Of a DNA stretch of 64,000 nucleotides, positions 29,923 through 48,327 are shown piece after piece (positions within the stretch are counted from its first letter, which is position 1; each line of letters starts with the position of its first letter). Below the pieces are notes generated by a model. That model had not been told where the DNA came from. It did no database searches and saw nothing but the letters and a program-made list of their open reading frames with translations. The position numbers and the translations under genes are program-made. Where the stretch lies: sequence record OR142618.1, one strand, 5' to 3'.

Positions 29923-31539
29923 ATGTCTATTGTATGTAAAATTTGTAATAAATCATTTCCTAGTATGATTACAAGTACACATCTAAAAACACATAACATC
30001 ACTACTGCAGAATACAAAGATCTTTATGGAAAATATTCTCTTGTATCAGATGAATATAGATCAAAGCGGTCAGAACAGTCATCTGGCATTAATAATCCTA
30101 ATTATGGAAATAAATGGTCAGACAGCATGAAAGAATCTATGTCTAATAAAAAATCTGGAACTATTCCGTGGAATAAAGGCATAGAGTTACACGATACTAC
30201 TATGTATGTGAAATCTGCAGAACAGAGAGAACTAAAGTACAAAGAAGGGATACTAACTAGGAAATCATATGTCAGAACTGTAGAAATAAATAAAAAAATT
30301 TCTGATAGTGTGAAGAAGTATGCTGCAGAAAATAAAGAAGAAGTAAAACAGAGAAGTGCCAAAGCAAAAGGTACATATAGTACAAAGAAAACGTTAGGGT
30401 TAGTGCAAATACGAAAAGGATATAAGTTAACCAAATCACATAAAGAAATAGCTATACAAACATTAAACAATTATAGGGCTTCTAAAATAGCTGAATCTAA
30501 TAAACAAATAGAAAGTAATATATCTCTTGCAAATCTAACATTATTAAATGACATAAATGAAAACAGCTTAGTGTTAAGGTGTAATATATGTAATAATGAA
30601 TGTTCTTTTACAAAACAATATTTTAGAGCTAGTAAATTTAAAATAGAATTATGTCCTGTGTGTTATCCTAGAAATAGTAATAGATCTGAAAAAGAAAAAG
30701 AATTAGAATATTTTATAACAAGTTTAGGTATTTCATGTATAAATTCTGCACGTATAAACAATAAAGAAATAGATATATTTTGTAAAGAATTAAATATTGG
30801 ATTTGAATTTAACGGATTATACTGGCATAGTGAGGATGTGTTAGAGTATTCTGGGTACAGTAAAACAAAAGATTACGAAAAGAAAATATTTTTTAGAGAT
30901 AAAGGAATTAGATTAATTCAAATATTTGAAGATGAGTGGGACTTAAAGCAAGATATAGTAAAGAGTAGAATAAGAGCTATATTAGGAAAAACAGAACACA
31001 AAATATATGCAAGGAAATGTACTGTTAAAGAAATAAATTCTAAAGTTGCAAATGATTTTGTAGAAAAAACACATTTACAAGGTAAAGGTAGAGCAAATGT
31101 AAGATTAGGGTTGTATTATAACAATGAACTAGTTTCTGTAATGACATTTTTAAATAAAGATATTACTAATAAAACATCGAGCTGTCAGATAAATCGTTTT
31201 AGTGTAAAACATAATACATCTATCCCCGGCGCCGCGGGAAAATTATTTGCTTACTATATAAATAACTATAATCCATCTAGTGTTATTTCGTATGCAGATT
31301 CTCGCTGGTCTGACGGTAATTTATATGAACAGCTAGGATTTAAATTAGATAAACAGACACTCCCTAATTACTGGTATATAAAAGATAATGATCTTAAAAG
31401 ATATCATAGATACAATTTTAGAAAAGATAAGTTGCCCGAAACTTTACTAACAGAAAAAGAATATATGGATAGTTTGGGATGGAATAGAATATGGGATTCG
31501 GGATCTACTAAATGGGTTTGGACAAATAAAGGGGCATAA
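29923..31539 (+). mobile_element. Free-standing Hef-like homing endonuclease between sheath and tube genes
   Basis: N-terminal C2H2 finger (CKIC...HLKTH); PWNKG NUMOD-like motif; EIDIF...IGFEFNGLYWHS; LIQIFEDEW; C-terminal RIWDSG. Confidence 0.8.
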
Positions 31540-37394: not shown

Positions 37395-38963
37395 ATGGCA
37401 GCAGAAGATTATTTAATTAAAAAGGCTTTTAAAAAGGTCTTATACACAGACAAACAGATAGAAGAATTAAAAAAATGCATGGATCCTATAAATGGTCCTA
37501 TGTATTTTATGACAAATTTTGTCTACATTCAGCATCCTACAAACGGTCGTCTGTTATTTAAACCGTTTCCATACCAAGTAGGTTTATTAGAAGCATTTCA
37601 CAATTATAGATATTCTATAGCTATGCTAGGAAGGCAGCTAGGTAAATCTACTGTAGCTGGATCTTATTTACTATGGTACGCAATGTTCGTACCTGATAGT
37701 TTTATTTTAGTTGCATCGAAAACAGGCGGCGACGCCAAAGAGATCATGGGTCGAATTAGGTTTGCATATGAAAGTTTGCCAGATCATATTAGGGCAGGTG
37801 CAATTACTTATAATAAACACAGTATAGAATTTGATAACGGATCTAAGATTAAATCAACTACTACTACCGAAAATACAGGTAGGGGAATGTCTATTTCGCT
37901 AGTATATTTAGATGAAATGGCATTCGTGCCGTACAATGTGGCTATAGAAATGTGGACTTCTCTATCACCTACATTATCCACTGGCGGTAAATGTATAATA
38001 ACTTCTACGCCTAATACCGACGAGGATTTGTTTGCCGATATATGGCATAATGCAAACAAATTAACTGACGAATACGGAAATGAACGAAAAATAGGTGCTA
38101 ATGGATTTAAGCCGTTTAAAGCTACTTGGAAAGATCATCCTGACAGAGATGAAAATTGGGCAACAATAGAGCGTGAAAAGATAGGGGAAGAAAGATTTCG
38201 TAGAGAACACGAAGTGGAGTTTATTTCTTTTGAAGAAACTCTTATAAATTCTATAAAATTAAATCAATTAGAATCTAAAACTCCTATAAGAAAAACAGGC
38301 CAAGTCCGTTGGTATGAAGAAATAAAGCCGACAAATACATATGTTGTTGGATTAGATCCATCTATGGGAGCCGGCGGCGACAATGCTGCAATACAAGTGT
38401 TAGAATTACCTACAATGAAACAAGTAGCTGAGTGGCAGCACAACAGAACACCAGTCGAAGGTCAAGTTAGGCTGTTAAATGAAATACTTACAGAAATACA
38501 AAACGCAGGTGTAGTAGAATTATATTGGTCGTTGGAATCTAATAATTTAGGAGAAGCTGCATTAGTAGTAATACGTGATACAGGAGAAGAATATTTTCCT
38601 GGGACATTTTTGCATGATCCTGTAAAACAAGCAGGGGCGAATAGTCGTAAAAGACAAGGTTTTCTTACTACTAATCGGACAAAAATAGAAGCATGTTCTA
38701 GATTGAAATCCTTAATAGAAAATAATAAAATAAAAATATCATCTTCTGCATTGATTAGTGAATTAAAGAACTATGTACACAGAGGAGCCACGTTTGAAGC
38801 TCGACCAGGAACTACAGACGATTTGGTGTCTGCACTTATATTAACACTAAGGATGACTCAGTTTATTGCATTATGGGATGATAATACAAATGGTGCAATC
38901 AGTGCAAGTATAGAAGTCGTCGATGAGGATGACGATAGTATGCCCATGCCTTTCTTATTTTAA
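37395..38963 (+). CDS. terL: Terminase large subunit (T4 gp17-like)
   Basis: Walker A LGRQLGKST; Walker B VYLDEMAF; TSTPN; nuclease GLDPSMGAGGD; DDLVSAL. Confidence 0.97.
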   Translation: MAAEDYLIKKAFKKVLYTDKQIEELKKCMDPINGPMYFMTNFVYIQHPTNGRLLFKPFPYQVGLLEAFHNYRYSIAMLGRQLGKSTVAGSYLLWYAMFVPDSFILVASKTGGDAKEIMGRIRFAYESLPDHIRAGAITYNKHSIEFDNGSKIKSTTTTENTGRGMSISLVYLDEMAFVPYNVAIEMWTSLSPTLSTGGKCIITSTPNTDEDLFADIWHNANKLTDEYGNERKIGANGFKPFKATWKDHPDRDENWATIEREKIGEERFRREHEVEFISFEETLINSIKLNQLESKTPIRKTGQVRWYEEIKPTNTYVVGLDPSMGAGGDNAAIQVLELPTMKQVAEWQHNRTPVEGQVRLLNEILTEIQNAGVVELYWSLESNNLGEAALVVIRDTGEEYFPGTFLHDPVKQAGANSRKRQGFLTTNRTKIEACSRLKSLIENNKIKISSSALISELKNYVHRGATFEARPGTTDDLVSALILTLRMTQFIALWDDNTNGAISASIEVVDEDDDSMPMPFLF

Positions 38964-38994
38964 ACTAAATATAGTTAAATTGGATTTAGATTTA

Positions 38995-40485
38995 ATGAAA
39001 CTATTTGAAGTGTTTACTTTATATGAAGATAAAGCAGAACTGATTGTGAAAAATCAAGGACCCAACCTCCTTGCCGCTGCTAAAAATTATGGATCGAATA
39101 TTCGTACAGCTGAAGAAATAATGAATGTTCTTAAGCGTGCAGATCCTACGTCTAATCAGAAATATTTGCAATGGATTACTAATAGATTTATTGCAGGTGA
39201 ATTTAGATTAGAAGATACTAATAGAATAAGGGCAGAACTTATATCATTCGAAAGATATAAACGTGTTTTACCGAAAAAAGATATAAATCAGTATAAAACA
39301 CTAGGAGAATTGTATGCAGTAATTGATCCATTAAATGACGCAGCAACAGGCAACGATCTGATTGGTGTATCTAATAAACAAGTTAAAAAGCATGCATATA
39401 ATGCCAAACGCCAAGAATTAATTTCGTCTGGTCAAGCAGATGTAATTTATAAAGGCCAAGAAGGAATGCTAGTTAATCCCAAAACAGAAGAAGCAGCAAT
39501 ATTCTTCGGTCAAGGAACTAGGTGGTGTACCGCAGCAACTAGTAGTGATAATATGTTTAGTCACTACCATAGTCAGGGACCGTTATATACTTGGTTAGGT
39601 TCGGATGGATTCAAAGCACAATTCCATTTAGAAACTAATCAATGGATGGATTCAAAAGACGAGCCTTTAGACAACGCTCAGATGTCTAAGCTATTGTTAA
39701 TTCCTATAATTAAAAAATTGTACGACGACGGTATAATTAAATCTGAGAAATCACTTGTCGGCGATCGTGGCGGCTTCGATGACGAATATGATAATAGACT
39801 ATCGGATGACTATTATTTCGACATGTGGGCTGATCGAAAATACCGTATCAAACGACATATTGAGAAACACGGCATGTCTGAGTATTTAATAGATACACTT
39901 TCTGTTAAAGATCCTTTATTACCGTTGTTTGTTTTACCAGAATACTCAAAATACCCTGCGTCGAAATCACTCGATGATTATTTTTTAAAATTATCCAAAT
40001 TAGAACCGCTTGACCAATATAAAGAGATAAATGGGTATTTTGAAAGTGATATGTTACTTCGATTAACTAGATACCTTGAAGATTCTACAGGGTCTCATTC
40101 TAAATCTTTAGATGATGCTGGATTTAATTTTGTTCGTCGATTACTGGACATAGGCGGAAAGGATTTTGATTTAATAATATCGAACTATCTAAAACATGTA
40201 GCTGAGAATTCTAAAACAAAACAATACCTTCTGTCTAATCTTCCGTTAGCTGTTGAGATTGCTAATTCGATTGAATGGCCGGAACTTATGACAGCAATTG
40301 AGCATGAGCTTAGCAATGCTAAAACACCAAAAGAAGAGAACGATGCAATAAAACTAGGCAGTGAGTTAATGTTTAAATCTAATAGCCTGCCTGTATCTAA
40401 ATGGTTTATTAATTTACTTAAAACTACAGATGCAGGTAAACGATACTTATCATCATTACCTGAGTATGACAACACAAAACAATAA
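38995..40485 (+). CDS. Hypothetical, probably packaged internal protein with a GTRWCT motif
   Basis: MKLFEVFTLYE N-terminus; ADPT..KYLQW and KDINQYKTL blocks; FGQGTRWCTAA. Confidence 0.6.
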   Translation: MKLFEVFTLYEDKAELIVKNQGPNLLAAAKNYGSNIRTAEEIMNVLKRADPTSNQKYLQWITNRFIAGEFRLEDTNRIRAELISFERYKRVLPKKDINQYKTLGELYAVIDPLNDAATGNDLIGVSNKQVKKHAYNAKRQELISSGQADVIYKGQEGMLVNPKTEEAAIFFGQGTRWCTAATSSDNMFSHYHSQGPLYTWLGSDGFKAQFHLETNQWMDSKDEPLDNAQMSKLLLIPIIKKLYDDGIIKSEKSLVGDRGGFDDEYDNRLSDDYYFDMWADRKYRIKRHIEKHGMSEYLIDTLSVKDPLLPLFVLPEYSKYPASKSLDDYFLKLSKLEPLDQYKEINGYFESDMLLRLTRYLEDSTGSHSKSLDDAGFNFVRRLLDIGGKDFDLIISNYLKHVAENSKTKQYLLSNLPLAVEIANSIEWPELMTAIEHELSNAKTPKEENDAIKLGSELMFKSNSLPVSKWFINLLKTTDAGKRYLSSLPEYDNTKQ

Positions 40486-40513
40486 ATACAACTAAAGTTT
40501 TGAGGTAAGAATT

Positions 40514-42004
40514 TTGATTAATTATAACAGAACTGCTAAAAAAATATTTTCTGTATTAAAAGGGCACAGCTATCGGGTAAAAATGTATGACCTAACAGGC
40601 AATGAAGTGATAGACCCGGAAAAAGCTCGTCGATTTTATGTTCAATATCCGAACATGATGATAACACTAGATGAAGACACTGGTGAAATTCGTATGAGCA
40701 AAAACAATAATATTTCTTTAACTGAATACGAAAGCACATTAGTTCAGTTAAAGAACATAGCAGTGCATTACATGCTAAATTTTACCTTGAAAGACTTCGG
40801 GAGAGAAATAACACCGAGGGATTTTGCATACCAAGCAAAAGTTAAAAAGGAAAAAGAAATGTCTAACGGATCTGTATCTGAATCTATATCTCCTCTAGCT
40901 GGTTCTAGAAAAACAAGTTATCAAACAATAGAAAATGTTAAAATACATGTAAAGCATAAGACACATGTCGACGAAGAGATTAGGGGAGCTCGTTCTAGAA
41001 ATATTTCTGCAATTTTTATAGAACACTCGGGAGAAAGGTTTCGTTTTCCTCACAATAATTTAGTTGGTGCCCGCGCCATGGCAAGACATATACAGCAAGG
41101 CGGTAATCAATACGATTCGATCGGTTCTTATATAATAGAAAGCTGTGCTAACTATACTAAGTTAAGAGAATTTATGAGATATATTCGTTCTAATAATCTT
41201 ATAACAGAAGATAGCAACGATGTTATTGCTAATATTAAGGAAAGCATAGATAGTATAGCTACAGATTTAAAACGTCTATCCGGTGTAAATACTTACGGTA
41301 TAGTAAAATCTAGGATCGAAGAAACGGAAGAAACAGAATGCGATGTATCTGATGTAGATAAGTTTAAGGATATGTTTACTATTCGTAAGTTTGACGATAA
41401 GTTTACTGATGTTCTTCCTATAGTGAGTAAACTCGTTAAGGAAAAACAATCATATTTAAAGAAAATAGAAGAAGCAGTTTCTAAACAAATTTATATAGAG
41501 TCTATGCCTATTTTAGAAACTAATGCTATAATATATGAAAATCCTAATATTAAGTTAGGACATAGCTTACAAGAACTTAGTTCTAGAATATTAGAAAATA
41601 CATTATTAGCTAATTATATTTCGTCGATGGGATCTAAGCTAATAAAAGAAAATACTTTAAATAAATTCGAATGTTCTATAATCAAATCATTTTTTGAAAA
41701 CGTTAGTGTTAAAAAAGCAAATACTAATCAAACTAATGGGTTATTTGCAGAATCGATCAACGAATTTGGAATAAATATTCCTGACTTCCCGGATAATAAC
41801 CCCTTTAATAAAAATAAAGACAACAAATACAGTAATTCAGATTTAGATAAACACGCATCTGATCAAAAAGTAGATGCAAATGACACTGTCTCTAAAATTG
41901 ATTTTATTATAAGCAATAGCCACGGAAGATATAATGACAGAGAAAAATTACTAAAATTGCCAGATGATGTTATTAACAGAATATATTCCAAAATTGCTAA
42001 ATAA
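40514..42004 (+). CDS. Hypothetical virion-region protein (start uncertain)
   Basis: RSRNISAIFIEHSGERFRFP..NLVGARAMARH block; C-terminal module shared with the 35834 protein. Confidence 0.6.
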   Translation: MINYNRTAKKIFSVLKGHSYRVKMYDLTGNEVIDPEKARRFYVQYPNMMITLDEDTGEIRMSKNNNISLTEYESTLVQLKNIAVHYMLNFTLKDFGREITPRDFAYQAKVKKEKEMSNGSVSESISPLAGSRKTSYQTIENVKIHVKHKTHVDEEIRGARSRNISAIFIEHSGERFRFPHNNLVGARAMARHIQQGGNQYDSIGSYIIESCANYTKLREFMRYIRSNNLITEDSNDVIANIKESIDSIATDLKRLSGVNTYGIVKSRIEETEETECDVSDVDKFKDMFTIRKFDDKFTDVLPIVSKLVKEKQSYLKKIEEAVSKQIYIESMPILETNAIIYENPNIKLGHSLQELSSRILENTLLANYISSMGSKLIKENTLNKFECSIIKSFFENVSVKKANTNQTNGLFAESINEFGINIPDFPDNNPFNKNKDNKYSNSDLDKHASDQKVDANDTVSKIDFIISNSHGRYNDREKLLKLPDDVINRIYSKIAK

Positions 42005-42084: not shown

Positions 42085-42113
42085 TTGACAAATAGATAAC
42101 TGCATTATATAAT
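42085..42113 (+). promoter_or_regulatory. Consensus sigma70 promoter of the ssDNA-binding protein gene
   Basis: TTGACA-N17-TATAAT. Confidence 0.92.
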
Positions 42114-42170: not shown

Positions 42171-42202
42171 GATAAAATAAAAAATATTAAGGATAATTCA
42201 TT

Positions 42203-43189
42203 ATGGCTTCTCTTGCTGAACTACGTCAAAAATTAAAAGATCAAGAAACAAAACGTGGCACAAAATCATCTGGCAGTGCAGATAAAAGTAATTTCCCATT
42301 CTGGGACATGAATGAAAACGACAGTGCTACTGTAAGATTTCTTCCTGATGCAAACACTGATAATACCTTTTTCTGGGTAGAAAAACAACAAATTAAAATT
42401 CCATTTAGTGGCATTGTAGGTATGAATAGTAAACCTACAGTTGTTACTGTACCGTGTGTAGAAATGTGGGGGGAATCTTGCCCTATTCATCAAGAAATCC
42501 GTCCATGGTTTAAAGATCCTTCGTTAGAGAAATTAGCGCGTACTTATTGGAAGAAACGTTCTTATATTTTCCAAGGACTTGTACGTAAGTCACCTCTTGT
42601 AGAACAAGAACTACCAGAGAATCCTATTCGCAAATTCACATTCGGAAGTCAGATTTTTAATCTAGTTAAATCGTCTCTATTAGACCCCGAAATGGAAAAC
42701 ATTCCCACTGATTATTTAAATGGTACTGATTTCCAGATAACTAAATTAATGAAGGGCCAATATGCCGATTACGCTACATCTAAATGGGCAAGGAAAGAAT
42801 CTTCGTTAACTGAAGAAGAATTCCAAGCAATCCAAACATATGGTCTGTATGATTTAAGTAAATTTTTACCTGCTAAACCTGATGCAGAAGCATTAGCTGC
42901 TATATTCGAGATGTTCGAAGAATCAGTAGAAGGTAAAGAATATGATCCGCAGCGTTGGGGGAAATACTATCGCCCTTACGGGGTTGAAGTTCCTACTAAT
43001 ACTTCCGTAAGTGTACCTGTATCTAAACCAGAACCTAAGACTACGGTATCTAGTTCTTCAGTTATGGAAGACGATAACGATGATCTTCCTTGGGAAGATA
43101 CTACTAAACCTGTAGAGCCTGTCAAATCTGCTTCTAATGCGCAAGATATAATTGCGCTCATCCGCGCCCGCCAAAACAGCGGCAACTAA
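42203..43189 (+). CDS. Single-stranded DNA-binding protein (T4 gp32-like)
   Basis: ATVRFLPD...FFWVE; CVEMWGESCPI; FQITKLMKGQYADYATSKW; acidic C-terminal tail. Confidence 0.92.
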   Translation: MASLAELRQKLKDQETKRGTKSSGSADKSNFPFWDMNENDSATVRFLPDANTDNTFFWVEKQQIKIPFSGIVGMNSKPTVVTVPCVEMWGESCPIHQEIRPWFKDPSLEKLARTYWKKRSYIFQGLVRKSPLVEQELPENPIRKFTFGSQIFNLVKSSLLDPEMENIPTDYLNGTDFQITKLMKGQYADYATSKWARKESSLTEEEFQAIQTYGLYDLSKFLPAKPDAEALAAIFEMFEESVEGKEYDPQRWGKYYRPYGVEVPTNTSVSVPVSKPEPKTTVSSSSVMEDDNDDLPWEDTTKPVEPVKSASNAQDIIALIRARQNSGN

Positions 43190-43194
43190 ATAGG

Positions 43195-43222
43195 GAGAGG
43201 GGATCGCTGATCCCCTCTCTTT
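43195..43222 (+). terminator. Hairpin / terminator after gp32
   Basis: GAGAGGGGATC-GCT-GATCCCCTCTC-TTT. Confidence 0.75.
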
Positions 43223-43295
43223 AATATAACCTAAAATAGCCAAAAAGTACAACTACAATGTTGGAAGGACGGCAGTATTATAAAAAGGACATTTT

Positions 43296-43541
43296 ATGAC
43301 AAAACCATTCGATATTTCTAAATTTAGAAAAGATATTACCAAAAGTATCACTGGCATTAGTACAGGATTTAATGACCCAACTATTTGGATTAGTACCGGC
43401 AACTATACTCTTAATTATCTCATTAGTAGCGACTTTAATAAAGGCGTACCTATGGGTAAAGTAACTATGTTTGCTGGCGAGTCGGGTTGTTTGCCTGAAA
43501 CTGCTAAAGTGAAAATTAGACTATCTAAGAAGCAATCTTAA
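43296..43541 (+). CDS. uvsX: UvsX/RecA N-extein (64 aa) fused to a 17-aa split-intein N-fragment
   Basis: WISTGNYTLNYLIS...GKVTMFAGESG | CLPETAKVKIRLSKKQS*; Cys1 codon at 43488. Confidence 0.88.
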   Translation: MTKPFDISKFRKDITKSITGISTGFNDPTIWISTGNYTLNYLISSDFNKGVPMGKVTMFAGESGCLPETAKVKIRLSKKQS

Positions 43542-43550
43542 CTGTCCAGT

Positions 43551-43590
43551 GTCTCCGTCGAGGATAAATACTTTTATCTAAAACGGAGAC
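43551..43590 (+). promoter_or_regulatory. RBS-sequestering hairpin containing a late promoter, upstream of the endonuclease
   Basis: GTCTCCGT/ACGGAGAC arms cover the GGAG RBS; GATAAATA at 43563-43570 lies inside. Confidence 0.7.
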
Positions 43591-43593
43591 TTT

Positions 43594-45027
43594 ATGGGAA
43601 ATTACAATGTTCTTTCTACAAAAAACTTTAAGAAGCTATGTAATGAGTTAAACATAGTAACGATATCAGAAAAGTACATTTCTGATATACGTAAGATAGA
43701 AGATTCTGCTAAGAGCAAAGTGGATTCTGCATCTCAGCGTATGATATTAACTATGATAACTGTGAAAGTTCCCGACTTATATGATGCATATAACAGATAC
43801 TATCAGCTCAGAACAGATGGTATTAGTACAAAAACTCAAGACAGTATTTCTTATATTTTTGGAAAAGACTTCCTCGAATCTGTTAATTTACTAATCAGTA
43901 ATAGATATAAAACTGCATTCCGTAAAGGAATGACAGTGGAAGAGGCATTTATAACACGTAATAAAGACTTTTCCAATAATGGTGTGTATTATAACCAGAT
44001 GACTGATAAGCAAAAGAAACGTTTATCATTATTGCTTAGTGTGTATACACCAGAAAGGTTGGAGTTTTATAAAAAGACAATTTCGTTTTTTATTAAGTTA
44101 GATTTGACTAATTATGCAGGAAGAATGAAAAGACTGATGAAACTGGGATCTAGTACGTCTTTATATGCTAGCGTATTACGGTATGGTAAATCTGTCGGAA
44201 AAAGCACACATTCATCTGTATCTGCGGTAAAGAGAAACTATTTGCCTACTTCGATACAATATTGGATGGCAAAGGGGTTTGATGAAGATACTGCATTAGT
44301 GAAGATAAACGAACATCAACAGAAAGCAAGTGCCATGTCTTCCAAAAAACTAAAAGGCACTAGCGAATACTCTGTTCGATCAGTTGCATATTGGATTAAA
44401 AACGGGTATAGCGAAGAAGAGGCAAAAGGGAAAGTATCTAATATACAGAATACTTGGAAAAATGTATCTCAAGAAGAGCGTGATCGAAGAATAGAATCGT
44501 GGATGACTACAATGAGTCTTAAAACAGACGAGGAGAAATCTTTGATAAACCTTAAAAAAACTCACAGCCCGGAAGGGATAATGGCAAGGACAAATTGCGA
44601 TTATGATATTGCATTTAAGCAAAGCGTTGATTTTTTTAAGAAACGAAATAATTCTTCTAAAGTATCTCAAGAACTATTTTGGGGAATTGCCGAGGATATC
44701 GATACCGATGGAGTTTACTTTTCTGAACTAAACTACGAATACCCTGTTATGGGGAAAATAGTAGATTTCTATGATTCTAAAAGCAAAACAGTAATCGAAT
44801 TTTATGGAAACTTTTGGCATGCAGATAGTACATATACTGATGACACACTGATATATGGAAAAACTGCTAAAGAAATAAGAGAATCGGACATTTACAGAGA
44901 AACGTTAATTAGATCATCTGATTTGGTTAGTGATTTTATAGTAGTTTGGGAAAAGGACTTTAGGAAGAATCCGAAAGAAACAATTAAAAATTTAGTTAAT
45001 ATTTTAAATAATAAAAGGAAATTTTAA
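43594..45027 (+). mobile_element. Free-standing Vsr-like homing endonuclease splitting the UvsX intein
   Basis: Repeated YW..KG..EE.A helices; C-terminal IVDFYDSKSKTVIEFYGNFWHAD and VVWEKD. Confidence 0.8.
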
Positions 45028-45030
45028 TAA

Positions 45031-46302
45031 ATGGAATACATCGAAAAGGAAGTAACAGTTAGTGAACTGAAGTCTCTCTACAGTAGTAATGAATACGAAA
45101 TTGAGTTAGACACACCAGATGGCTGGCAAAAACTGGGATCTTGGTTCGATAAAGGCCCTCTTAGTATGGTGACGGTAGAAACGCAGGATGGGTTAGTTAC
45201 TAGATGTGCAGTAAACCATATGATCGAAGTGGTAGACGGATCGGAAACTTTTTGGACACTTGCAAAAGACTTGTACGAAGGCCAACAAGTGCTTACTGTA
45301 AACGGTGTCTCAACAATTAGTTCTGTAACTGAAAGTGGCATCGAAGAATGTTTCGATTTCGAAATACTCCACGAAAATCATCGTTACTATGGTGATGGAT
45401 TCTCTTCTCACAATAGTGGCAAATCGTATATAGTATCAGGAAACATTGTAAAAGATGCACAAGAAAAGGGAATTTTTGTTGTATTACTTGATTCAGAAAA
45501 TGCACTCGACGAATCTTGGCTACATGCACTAGGTGTAGACACTGGACCGGAAAAAATGTTACGCATCTCTGTATCGATGATAGATGATGTAGCAAAAATT
45601 ATTAGTGATTTTGTTAAAGATTACAAGACTAATTATGCCGAACTACCTAACAATGATCGACCGAAGGTGCTTTTTGTTATTGACTCGCTCGGAATGTTAT
45701 TGACACCAACGGAAACTGCACAATTTCAAAATGGTGATATGAAAGGAGATATGGGCAGGAAAGCAAAACAATTAAAAGCATTGATTTCTAACTGTACAAA
45801 TATGTTCGGCAACTTAGACATAGGCCTTGTTTGTACTAACCATACATATGCATCTCAAGATTTATTTCAGCCCGACGCTGTAATTTCGGGTGGCAGCGGC
45901 GCAGTCTATGCCGCGTCAATTGTAGTGGCAATGCAAAAATTAAAGTTAAAAGAAGACGAAGCAGGTAATAAAATTTCTGAAGTAGCTGGTATTCGTGCAG
46001 TATGTAAAGTTGTGAAATCTCGATATGCAAAGCCGTTTGAGACAGTAAAAGTAAATATTCCATATGATACAGGTATGAGTCCGATATCGGGTCTATTTGA
46101 CTTGTTTGAAAAAACAGGTAAACTTGTAAAACAAGGCAATAGATACAAGTACATAACCAAAGATGGTACCGAAATGCTGTATTATAGGAAAGAATGGAAT
46201 GATTACGATAAACTAAAAGTAATTATGAATGAATTTACAGACGAAGACCTAGGCAATGTCGTAGAAGTGGAAGAGGGTCATTTAGAAGAGTTCGATGAAT
46301 AA
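45031..46302 (+). CDS. uvsX: Split-intein C-fragment (128 aa) fused to the UvsX/RecA C-extein (295 aa)
   Basis: DTPDGWQK; block B RCAVNH; blocks F/G ECFDFEILHENHRYYGDGFSSHN | SGKS; then LDSENALD, IDSLGML, DMGRKAK, ISGGSG. Confidence 0.9.
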   Translation: MEYIEKEVTVSELKSLYSSNEYEIELDTPDGWQKLGSWFDKGPLSMVTVETQDGLVTRCAVNHMIEVVDGSETFWTLAKDLYEGQQVLTVNGVSTISSVTESGIEECFDFEILHENHRYYGDGFSSHNSGKSYIVSGNIVKDAQEKGIFVVLLDSENALDESWLHALGVDTGPEKMLRISVSMIDDVAKIISDFVKDYKTNYAELPNNDRPKVLFVIDSLGMLLTPTETAQFQNGDMKGDMGRKAKQLKALISNCTNMFGNLDIGLVCTNHTYASQDLFQPDAVISGGSGAVYAASIVVAMQKLKLKEDEAGNKISEVAGIRAVCKVVKSRYAKPFETVKVNIPYDTGMSPISGLFDLFEKTGKLVKQGNRYKYITKDGTEMLYYRKEWNDYDKLKVIMNEFTDEDLGNVVEVEEGHLEEFDE

Positions 46303-48130
46303 ATTATGCGAAACAGATCGTATTAATATTATCAAATTACACTTCGATGATTTAAAATCTGTATCTGAATTAAAGAAAATATATGGAGTCTCTTATGATG
46401 TCATTAAAACCATCATAAGAGATGAAACGAATCGTCCGCCGTTGCAAGAAACTGATATAAAAATTTTGAAATTTAAAAAACTTGTTTCAAAGGAGTTGTT
46501 ATTTGAATTACATGTAATTAAAAAACAATCATTTAATGAAATAAGAAAAACTTATAAGATTAATGAACTTCATTTAAAACAAGTGTTTAATGATTACGGA
46601 ATACCAATTGAAAAGTGTTTATATACTGCTACTAACAAGAAGCGTAAAACAAAAAAGCCTGAAGATTTTACTAAAGACTTTTTCGAACACTTAGTATATA
46701 ACGAAAGACGAACAATTAGTTGGATAAAAAATAATTATAACTTTAATTTTGAAGAACTAAAACATCATTTAACACATTTAAAAATCGATTATACTAATTC
46801 GTTGCCACCTGCTGTAAAACATCAACAAGATAAAATATCTAGAGAAACTCTAGCAGAAGAATTAAAAATTAAATCTATTGTTGATATAATAAATGAATAC
46901 GGAATTTCTAGAACTTATGTAGAAAGCGTTATAAAAGAATACAATATACAGTATTTTACAAAACCGAAACATTCTATATTAAGTGGTAAAGAATCAGAAA
47001 TTTATCGGATGTATTATGATGAATGTATGACTACATACCAAATAGCAGAAAAATTGGGAGTATGTCAATACACCATATGGAAAATAATGGCAGATAACGG
47101 ATGGAAAACACGAGAACCGATTAAAAAAATTGATTTGATTTGGAATGATATAAAAGAAGAAGTTGTTAAATTAATAGACAACGGTTATACATTAGCTGCT
47201 TTATGTGAAAAATACGAAATAACATCTATTACTGAAAAGTTAATAGAAGAAGGTATAAAATATACAAAGGGAAATATTTCTTCTGGTCATGCAGAAATAT
47301 CTGAATATGTGCGTTCATTGGGATTTAATGTAATCGACAATGATCGTACTATTATATTTCCGCGAGAAATTGATATTTTTATTCCCGAACTTAACATAGG
47401 AATAGAATACAACGGATTATATTTTCATAGCACACGAACAGAAGGAAATGTAACAAAGCATAGAGAAAAATATAGCATATGTAAACAAAAAGGTATTCGT
47501 TTAATACAAATTTTTGAAGATGAATTTATTCATAAGAAAGAACTAGTAAAGAGAAAATTAGCGCACATTTTAGGAAAATCTAATAATAAATGTTATGCAA
47601 GGAATTGTATAGTTAAAGAAATATCGGTAGCAGACAAACGAAATTTCTTTAAAAAATATCACATACAAGAAGATTCTGCATCCTCGTATGCATATGGATT
47701 ATATTATGATAATGAATTAGTTTGTGCTATGTCTTTTCTTAAAAAGAAGAAATGTACAGAACTAGTTAGATATGCATCTTCTATGCACGTGATCGGCGGA
47801 TTTTCTAAGTTGTTGAAATATTGTATTAATAATAACAAAATAGATGTTATAAACACATATGCTGATCTCAGATGGTCGAATCCGACAAATAATGTATATG
47901 TAAACAATGGGTTTGATATACTGTATGAGACTGATTTTAATTACACTTATGTGAGTAAAGAGGATTTTTCAAAAAGGCTTAATAGGCAAAAATTTATGAA
48001 ACACAAGTTGAAAAACATTTTATCAGATTTCGATAAATCATTAACAGAAGAAGAGAATATGAAAAATAATGGATTTTATCGAGTATACGATGCTGGCCAT
48101 TTAAAATTGCAATATAAGGTTAATAAATGA
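46295..48130 (+). mobile_element. Hef-like homing endonuclease with repeated HTH-like N-terminal units
   Basis: EIDIFIPELNIGIEYNGLYFHS; LIQIFEDE; C-terminus paralogous to the 29923 ORF. Confidence 0.8.
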
Positions 48131-48327
48131 TTACAGATGTTGAAGCAATAAATGAAATTTGGGCTGCCGTGCGACCATATATTAAGTCATCTGAGCGCAT
48201 TCATGCAGCGGATGCGTTTATAGAAGTTTTAGATGAATACGGAATGCTTGATGTAGATATTCAAATGTTTGAAAAAGAACTTAAAATAGCAGCAAAAACA
48301 CATTTAGGTGAAGCAGATGACGACTAA
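48127..48327 (+). CDS. Hypothetical protein
   Basis: 66 aa, ATGA overlap. Confidence 0.65.
   Translation: MITDVEAINEIWAAVRPYIKSSERIHAADAFIEVLDEYGMLDVDIQMFEKELKIAAKTHLGEADDD

Follow-up and report, generated by a model that had tools for sequence, protein, structure and literature searches.

A predicted VidaL-type split intein and a putative Vsr-like endonuclease gene interrupt uvsX in the Pseudomonas jumbo phage Callisto

The split uvsX gene

The gene for the UvsX recombinase lies in two halves at positions 43296 to 46302 of the window analysed here, a stretch of 64,000 nucleotides from sequence record OR142618.1. The first half ends in a 17-residue segment and the second begins with a 128-residue segment, which are predicted to be the N-terminal (IntN) and C-terminal (IntC) pieces of a split intein, and a third open reading frame (ORF), here called HEG1, occupies the gap between them. 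The 6 kb from 42200 to 48200 are 100% identical, at the same coordinates, to Pseudomonas phage Callisto (OR142618), a PA5oct-like jumbo phage of the genus Wroclawvirus with a genome of ~287 kb. Ten other PA5oct-like records are 99.2-99.8% identical to this region, with an identical gene layout in all. The elements of the locus are listed below, with a slash marking each predicted splice junction.

43285..43289, plus strand: ribosome-binding site (RBS) AAGGA of the N-half, read from the sequence, 6 nt 5' of the ATG
43296-43541, plus strand: N-half ORF, 81 aa, C terminus ...KVTMFAGESG/CLPETAKVKIRLSKKQS followed by a stop
43296..43487, plus strand: UvsX N-extein, 64 codons, ending in ...KVTMFAGESG, the first half of the Walker A P-loop
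43488..43541, plus strand: predicted IntN, 17 codons (CLPETAKVKIRLSKKQS) and a TAA stop, with Cys1 as the predicted first nucleophile
43551..43590, plus strand: predicted RNA hairpin 5' of the endonuclease gene
43594..45027, plus strand: putative endonuclease ORF HEG1, 477 aa
44650..45024, plus strand: predicted Vsr-like nuclease domain of HEG1, residues 353-477
45015..45019, plus strand: RBS AAGGA of the C-half, within the 3' end of HEG1, 11 nt 5' of the C-half ATG
45031-46302, plus strand: C-half ORF, 423 aa, with ...GDGFSSHN/SGKSYIV at residues 121-135
45031..45414, plus strand: predicted IntC, 128 codons (MEYIEKEVTV...GDGFSSHN)
45415..46302, plus strand: UvsX C-extein, 295 codons and a stop, beginning with Ser+1 (SGKSYIV...), the second half of Walker A

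A preliminary description of this DNA had reported a Walker A motif broken between two separate ORFs, and GESG/CLPETAKVKIRLSKKQS with its stop codon and SSHN/SGKS were indeed found there. Further points of that description were borne out. Joining the exteins gives the 359 aa (39.8 kDa) that had been calculated, with the P-loop GESGSGKS restored and VTMFAGESGSGK as the predicted splice-junction peptide. HEG1 is out of frame with the N-half and in frame with the C-half, and its end reads TAA (45025-27), TAA (45028-30), ATG (45031), which puts the C-half ATG 3 nt past the HEG1 stop. The C-half has its own AAGGA. IntN is basic, with a net charge of +4 (isoelectric point 10.0), versus -7 for the first 30 residues of IntC and -17 for the whole of IntC.

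Both exteins are recognisable as parts of one recombinase. The N-extein matches PHROG 97, UvsX-like recombinase, at E = 3e-13 and aligns with residues 26-64 of a solved phage UvsX (9gbg), and the C-extein matches Pfam RecA (E = 2e-10, profile positions 59-262, from C-half residue 125) and PHROG 97 (E = 2e-46) as well as solved UvsX and RecA structures. The PHROG UvsX profile runs on across the break with neither gap nor overlap, residues 1-65 of the N-half corresponding to profile positions 14-84 and residues 128-396 of the C-half to positions 83-445. Removal of the intein leaves the host motif whole, as the profile is continuous at 83/84 and no residue is gained or lost. Because the UvsX profile is continuous and the 128 extra residues match a solved intein (E = 1e-35), the layout is not due to chance.

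Variation was assessed in an alignment of 42200-48200 from ten Wroclawvirus genomes. The N-extein contains 11 variable sites (12 base changes) and the C-extein 20 (21 base changes), all of them synonymous. The resulting 33 synonymous versus 0 non-synonymous differences indicate strong purifying selection on both uvsX halves, and thus a fractured gene that is functional. The corresponding synonymous and non-synonymous changes number 24 and 3 in the upstream gene gp32, and 25 and 11 in a Hef-like endonuclease gene downstream.

The intein and its relatives

Residues 5-131 of the C-half match residues 23-145 of the chain of VidaL, a split intein of solved structure (PDB 6vgv/6vgw), at E = 1.1e-35. 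The IntN region, taken as the 24 residues around the end of the N-half, aligns with the start of the VidaL chain (ESGCLPETAKVKIRLSKK versus ESGALPKEAVVQIRLTKK, 6vgv being a C1A mutant), and the alignment spans the full length of both the 17-aa IntN and the 16-aa IntN of VidaL. An IMG/VR locus (L008) encodes the exact VidaL sequence in uvsX, in a matching three-ORF layout and with a native Asn where the crystal construct has Ala. Compared with this native VidaL, Callisto IntC is 53% identical (65/123 residues) and IntN shares 10/16 residues, while the flanking ESG/ and /SGK are identical. By homology, the uvsX intein and VidaL are orthologues that share an insertion site.

The residues associated with class-1 splicing are present. 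A Cys directly follows GESG, the C terminus reads SSHN/SGKS with Ser+1, and Cys1 is conserved in every split and contiguous relative. Block B contains His63 (CAVNH), with Ala in IntC in place of the usual Thr of TxxH, as in VidaL; block F has the motif C107-x-D109-F110 (CFDFEILH) with H114/H117, and His127-Asn128 are terminal. His63 and Asp109 align with the equivalent VidaL residues, and His63, Cys107, Asp109, His114, His117, His127, Asn128, Ser+1 and the GKS that follows are invariant in 35 aligned relatives. The locus has every sequence-level hallmark of a VidaL-type atypically split intein set in the fractured-gene arrangement of Dassa et al. IntC is also distantly similar (~31% identity) to inteins carried by the large subunit of the terminase (TerL) in many cultured Vi01-like Salmonella, Klebsiella and Escherichia phages, which suggests a common origin of the UvsX and Vi01-like TerL inteins.

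A search of a 5.8-billion-protein collection with IntC yielded 103 clusters. About 60 of these start with IntC, like the Callisto C-half. Another ~35 encode all four parts, N-extein, IntN-like segment, IntC and C-extein, without interruption in a single ORF of ~495 aa. The contiguous relatives run GESG/CLPKSAKIKVRLTKKEERQISVGELKTLY... uninterrupted past the break point of the split uvsX, and one such junction, GESG/CLPKSAKIKVRLTKKEERQISVGELKTLYDSGLYNIELDTPDGYQ, corresponds to Callisto IntN and IntC bridged by a short loop. The split would accordingly lie in the loop between ...VKIRL.. and ..EVTV.EL, after beta-strand 2. The state of the locus was compared at 80 IMG/VR loci. A contiguous mini-intein (133-152 aa) is present in 32, and 24 are split with a HEG1 homologue in the gap. 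One further split locus (L007) holds a 5'-truncated remnant of such a homologue, and 17 have no recognisable one (14 with a spacer of 21-240 nt, and the distant relatives L080-L082 with longer gaps); the remaining 6 are cut off at a contig end or match IntC only in part. Most split loci have an IntN of 15 aa, others have one of 16-19 aa and three distant loci one of 26-29 aa, so that a 17-aa IntN is ordinary in this family; the natural range given in PMC13014065 is 15-37 aa.

Some of these loci differ chiefly in the endonuclease gene. L013 and L079 have a 16-aa IntN, CLPKEAVVQVRLTKKG, one residue off that of VidaL, and an IntC near-identical to that of L008 and L018, with a 56-nt spacer replacing the endonuclease gene. 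L007, compared with L009, retains only the last ~75 endonuclease codons (TVIEFYGDFFHRNP...), straight after the IntN stop. These two comparisons can be read as stages caught in the homing cycle. To count how often contiguous, split and endonuclease-less states changed into one another, a tree of 53 IntC regions was built; 27/50 of its branches are unresolved, and the only changes it supports are a few recent losses of the endonuclease (L013 vs L008/L018, L029 vs L005/L016 and L007 vs L009).

Close IntC relatives among cultured phages were confined to the 11 PA5oct-like records and Salicola phage SCTP-2 (52% identity). Gene 204 of the latter (L083), annotated as a 'hypothetical protein' of 656 aa, encodes a UvsX that contains two contiguous mini-inteins, the VidaL-type one in the P-loop. 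The second is at ...ISGG/CLVADTD...VVSHN/SGQIF, a site that is uninterrupted in Callisto UvsX, and many metagenomic C-halves of 371-387 aa likewise end at a second intein.

The endonuclease gene, its surroundings and the cassette

HEG1 has no match in Pfam, including the Pfam Vsr family, in PHROGs or in NCBIfam. Homologues with 33-38% identity fill the same gap in 24 IMG/VR loci overall, and over its length HEG1 is 32-37% identical to the ORFs of the 15 loci aligned, the VidaL loci among them. In the family alignment, which comprises 16 members from IMG/VR loci, residues E382, D391 (VDF390-392), E402, G405, H409, D432, R435, W452 and E453 are invariant, within the motif string VDF...IEFYGNFWH...D..R...VVWE. 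The N-terminal two-thirds of the protein are helical, with repeated YW..G....EA...V..IQ modules that are presumed to bind DNA. An AlphaFold model of full-length HEG1 has a mean predicted local distance difference test score (pLDDT) of 83.9, and a model of the nuclease domain a pLDDT of 95.8 and a predicted template modelling score (pTM) of 0.89.

The fold search with full-length HEG1 was dominated by spurious helical matches and was repeated with the nuclease domain alone. The strongest Foldseek matches of the domain that could be interpreted were then E. coli Vsr (1vsr and 1cw0; probability 0.8, template modelling score 0.49-0.58, at weak E-values of 0.2-0.3), and also the Vsr-like nuclease domains of PvuRts1I and AbaSI and several mitoribosomal proteins (weak E-values of 0.05-0.5). 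The top three matches of the HEG1 family profile against the PDB are all Vsr, again with weak E-values of ~0.5. That alignment pairs D391, E402 and H409 with Vsr D51, F62 and H69 and puts D432 within 2 residues of Vsr D97. HEG1 has counterparts of the conserved Vsr motifs Asp51, Phe67-Trp68-His69 and Asp97. Glu at the position of Vsr Phe62 is the hallmark of a Vsr-like homing-endonuclease family (Dassa et al. 2009, PMC2677866), in which HEG1 was placed because of E402. Taken together, lines of fold evidence that are concordant but individually not significant point to HEG1 as a Vsr-like free-standing homing endonuclease.

The hairpin at 43551-43590 has a minimum free energy of -22.8 kcal/mol (z = -3.7), and none of 200 shuffled sequences folds as well. 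Its outer stem is formed by GUCUCCGU and ACGGAGAC, and a Shine-Dalgarno-like GGAG (43585-43588) is in the 3' arm, 6 nt before the HEG1 ATG. The inner stem and loop include GATAAATA (43563-43570), a 7/8 match to the T4-type late-promoter box. The design CCAG-stem-(G/T)ATAAATA-stem(GGAG)-ATG recurs at most related loci, L008 among them, 5' of the HEG1 homologue. Dassa et al. found an RBS-hiding hairpin, often with TATAAATA, in 15/16 fractured genes and likened these hairpins to that of Aeh1 mobE, which attenuates endonuclease translation (PMC2677866). The Callisto hairpin probably holds down HEG1 translation by hiding its RBS. No stable structure was found around the RBS and start of the C-half.

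The cassette from Cys1 to Asn128 (43488-45414, 1927 nt) contains 2 variable sites among the ten phages, versus ~48 predicted from the flanking rate of 2.5% (Poisson P ~2e-18). IntN, hairpin and IntC have none; both sites are in the HEG1 gene, and both are singleton and non-synonymous. In a comparison of 44 kb from four genomes, the two longest tracts free of single-nucleotide polymorphisms (SNPs), 43476-44497 and 44499-45519, are adjacent and jointly bracket the cassette. The next longest measures 653 nt, and the third and fifth longest fall within the Hef-like gene at 46295-48130. The tract of low variation extends from 12 nt before Cys1 to 105 nt past Asn128, and several flanking haplotypes abut it. 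This pattern points to an intein and endonuclease cassette much younger than its surroundings, a mobile unit that spread recently. Such low diversity would be expected if the cassette had repeatedly homed into alleles lacking it, with short co-conversion tracts, and the pattern is indirect evidence of this.

uvsX is part of a T4-style recombination module: it follows the gene for a gp32-type single-stranded DNA-binding protein and precedes those for a UvsY-like mediator and a helicase. At 42085-42113, 5' of gp32, the sequence matches the sigma-70 promoter consensus perfectly (TTGACA-17-TATAAT). Immediately 3' of gp32, at 43195-43219, a perfect 11-bp GC-rich palindrome (GAGAGGGGATC...GATCCCCTCTC) looks like a bidirectional terminator. 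If it is efficient, uvsX must have its own promoter within 43220-43295, an interval in which none was identified.

The Hef-like gene (HEG2, 611 aa) is a second free-standing homing-endonuclease gene, whose start overlaps the last 8 nt of uvsX (ATGAATAA). It matches PHROG 3339 (E = 4e-95) and has several helix-turn-helix modules and a weak match to MTES_1575 PD-(D/E)xK. With one endonuclease gene inserted and another at its end, uvsX is both invaded and flanked by selfish nucleases. Hef-like genes are also close to uvsX in the metagenomic loci L003, L012, L034, L039, L061 and L064, and a paralogue (40% identity over 289 aa; PHROG 3339, E = 8e-98) lies at 29923-31539 between the tail sheath and tail tube genes. 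Elsewhere in the window, 39000-41000 is hypervariable, with 296 and 264 variable positions per kb versus 10-30 elsewhere in four phages that are otherwise 97-99% identical, counts that may include alignment artefacts. The ORFs concerned (38923-40485 and 40514-42004) are annotated as virion structural proteins in PA5oct, and allele replacement or a host-range determinant could account for the variation.

Interpretation and comparison with known systems

The interpretation preferred here, with a probability of roughly 0.88, is that the UvsX halves are made as two polypeptides, which find each other through the basic IntN and acidic IntC and are joined by class-1 trans-splicing into a 359-aa UvsX. 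A VidaL-family class-1 mini-intein in the P-loop codons of uvsX would have been split after its second beta-strand by the gene for a free-standing Vsr-like endonuclease. Two products would result, the N-extein with the 17-aa basic IntN and the 128-aa acidic IntC with the C-extein. Once the intein pieces have associated, a thioester would form at Cys1 and be transferred to Ser+1, cyclisation of Asn128 would free the intein, and an O-to-N shift would complete a UvsX with an intact P-loop. Translation of HEG1 would probably be kept low by the hairpin, and the C-half would be translated from its own AAGGA, with a start 3 nt past the HEG1 stop. HEG1 would have been active at least until recently, and the cassette would most likely have spread by HEG1 cleavage of cassette-free uvsX alleles in co-infection, followed by recombinational repair. 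That split intein and HEG1 still form one actively homing unit, in which HEG1 cuts cassette-free uvsX near the P-loop codons and so mobilises the whole split intein, is proposed tentatively, at somewhat less than even odds. If so, active homing would explain a 1.9-kb cassette that is near-identical in ten phages from Europe and Japan, with flanks differing at 2-5% of sites.

Several observations weigh against parts of this interpretation. The curated intein and Hint hidden Markov models of Pfam and NCBIfam do not match IntC, for which PHROGs likewise gave no match, nor do they match the contiguous relative P0025; being blind to the VidaL-type subfamily, these models leave the identification to rest on VidaL homology, and their blindness is probably why no annotator flagged the uvsX intein. 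The similarity between HEG1 and Vsr is weak by E-value (0.2-0.6). HEG1 deviates at near-invariant positions of its family (D406N, N411S, P412T and W429R), its only two polymorphisms in the ten phages both change the protein, and the Callisto copy may be decaying. The box TATAAATA is under-represented across the window, with 13 found versus 23 expected; since it is not enriched, the hairpin's GATAAATA may lack promoter function in Callisto. Finally, the GenBank record of PA5oct flags only the orthologue of the C-half as detected by electrospray ionisation tandem mass spectrometry, and splicing in the phage is what we infer.

That flag would also suit a dead intein, in which the intein halves hold the UvsX fragments together non-covalently as an enzyme of two pieces, or in which the N-half is dispensable. 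The intein-less nrdA of Aeh1 is comparable, and active enzymes from intein-less fractured genes are known (PMC2677866). A dead intein is nevertheless judged very improbable, as all catalytic intein residues are kept and are invariant across 35 relatives, VidaL, the nearest relative to have been characterised, has a splicing half-life of ~1 min (PMC13014065), and a break inside the P-loop would leave the unspliced ATP site with a 145-residue insert. Hardly any weight is given to removal at the RNA level by a group I or group II intron carrying the endonuclease ORF, or to uvsX being a decaying pseudogene. Endonuclease-bearing group I introns often interrupt phage genes, and Vsr-like endonuclease ORFs do occur in recA group I introns (PMC2677866). 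However, an Rfam scan of 43000-46600 returned no family at E <= 1, upon which the idea of an RNA intron was dropped, the flanks of the break are homologous to an intein at the protein level, and the two halves have their own start signals and lie in different reading frames. A pseudogene is ruled out by the absence of non-synonymous differences in the exteins.

The low variation of the cassette could also have arisen without homing, through a single recent entry, the flanks being older as a result of recombination with diverged cassette-free relatives, or through constraint at the nucleotide level. We regard this as unlikely, though far from negligible. The cassette is present in each of the 11 sequenced relatives, no Wroclawvirus allele lacking it turned up and no homing event was directly observed; the departures of HEG1 from its family and the long SNP-free tracts in neighbouring HEG2 fit such an origin as well. 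On the other side, the limits of the tract (12 nt before and 105 nt after the intein) and the varied flanking haplotypes fit repeated short-tract conversion centred on the element, and nucleotide constraint over 1.9 kb of coding sequence is implausible where neighbouring essential genes vary at 2-5% of sites.

Trans-splicing by a split intein, the reading advanced in the preliminary description, gains support from the homology of IntC to the validated VidaL, from contiguous relatives that bridge the halves, from an endonuclease family in the same gap of ~25 related loci and from the lack of any RNA intron in the Rfam scan. The comparison with known UvsX split inteins that it had recommended led to VidaL (6vgv) at the same insertion site. 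Its suggestion of a new short-IntN tool holds in that the Callisto intein is a candidate tool; the novelty was overstated, because VidaL, with a 16-aa IntN, a structure and live-cell use, has been published as an ultra-short-IntN tool of this class. Nor is the IntN unusually short, 15-19 aa being the norm in the VidaL-type family. The Callisto intein is predicted to be a further natural VidaL variant, carried by a phage able to grow at 37 C; metagenomes contain dozens of others with an IntN of 15-19 aa. Such variants could be screened for speed, orthogonality and extein tolerance, although this kind of tool exists already.

VidaL-type inteins are systematically missed by automated annotation. 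The three ORFs appear in PA5oct-like records as "hypothetical protein", "RecA-like protein (x2)" or "UvsX-like recombinase (x2)", the middle one being "hypothetical" in every record, and a split intein would explain why uvsX/recA is annotated as two genes and a "hypothetical protein" in these genomes. It would be the second fractured gene in Wroclawvirus, besides PolB. A study of phage MIJ3 (PMC6892783) describes the PolB split intein only and does not mention a uvsX/recA intein, the main text of the PA5oct omics paper mentions neither UvsX nor inteins, and in the literature searched no paper pairs PA5oct with UvsX or its intein or describes the uvsX intein of PA5oct-like phages. With PAO1 as host, phage and bacterium form a tractable pair for studying in vivo trans-splicing and the endonuclease-driven spread of split inteins, so far inferred mainly from metagenomes. 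Should the homing unit be real, this would be the first culturable system, within the collections and literature searched, for a natural ultra-short-IntN split intein in vivo, and one could ask whether splicing, which would depend on Cys1 and could be redox or temperature sensitive, gates recombinase activity in infection.

The closest known system is VidaL, a naturally split, cysteine-dependent UvsX intein with a 16-aa IntN, split after beta-strand 2, with a splicing half-life of ~1 min at 37 C and with uses in semisynthesis and live-cell protein engineering, as set out in PMC13014065, which names Neugebauer et al. 2017 and Burton et al. 2020 as the source works. The Callisto intein shares with VidaL the UvsX host, the insertion site GESG/C...HN/SGK, the predicted Cys1/Ser+1 chemistry and the split after beta-strand 2, and the native VidaL loci L008 and L018 have the same hairpin, Vsr-like endonuclease and IntC layout. 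It differs in having an IntN of 17 rather than 16 aa and an IntC of 128 rather than 123 aa, with about half of the residues changed, and in a HEG1 with an extra N-terminal region of ~100 aa, common only to L005 and L042. The host is a cultured, mesophilic Pseudomonas jumbo phage, whereas VidaL comes from a metagenomic contig; splicing of VidaL has been validated experimentally, whereas that of the Callisto intein is predicted from its sequence.

The arrangement resembles the fractured genes of Dassa et al. 2009 (PMC2677866) in its Vsr-like endonuclease with the hallmark Glu, encoded on the same strand between the intein halves, in a hairpin with a late-promoter-like box, in a downstream half that begins at the endonuclease stop and in its location in a phage gene for DNA metabolism. 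However, the inteins in that study are canonically split, with an IntN of ~100 aa, except for a terminase intein, and UvsX is absent from its eight fractured enzyme types. In addition, a 3-nt spacer separates the Callisto endonuclease and C-half, as against overlaps of 6-69 nt, and the Callisto late box is a 7/8 match. The AceL and GOS TerL inteins (IntN 25-37 aa) and PolB16 OarG (IntN 15 aa) likewise combine a very short IntN with a large IntC, are of phage or metagenomic origin and are useful in semisynthesis. As described in PMC13014065, the split in the TerL inteins follows helix alpha-1 (site S2) rather than beta-2 (site S1), PolB16 is cysteine-less, and both are found in other host proteins. 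The split intein in PolB of MIJ3 (PMC6892783) comes from the same genus and likewise belongs to a fractured gene with an intervening endonuclease. It differs from the uvsX locus in its host protein, DNA polymerase B, in its HNH endonuclease and in a canonical split that leaves blocks A, N2, B and N4 in the N-terminal part.

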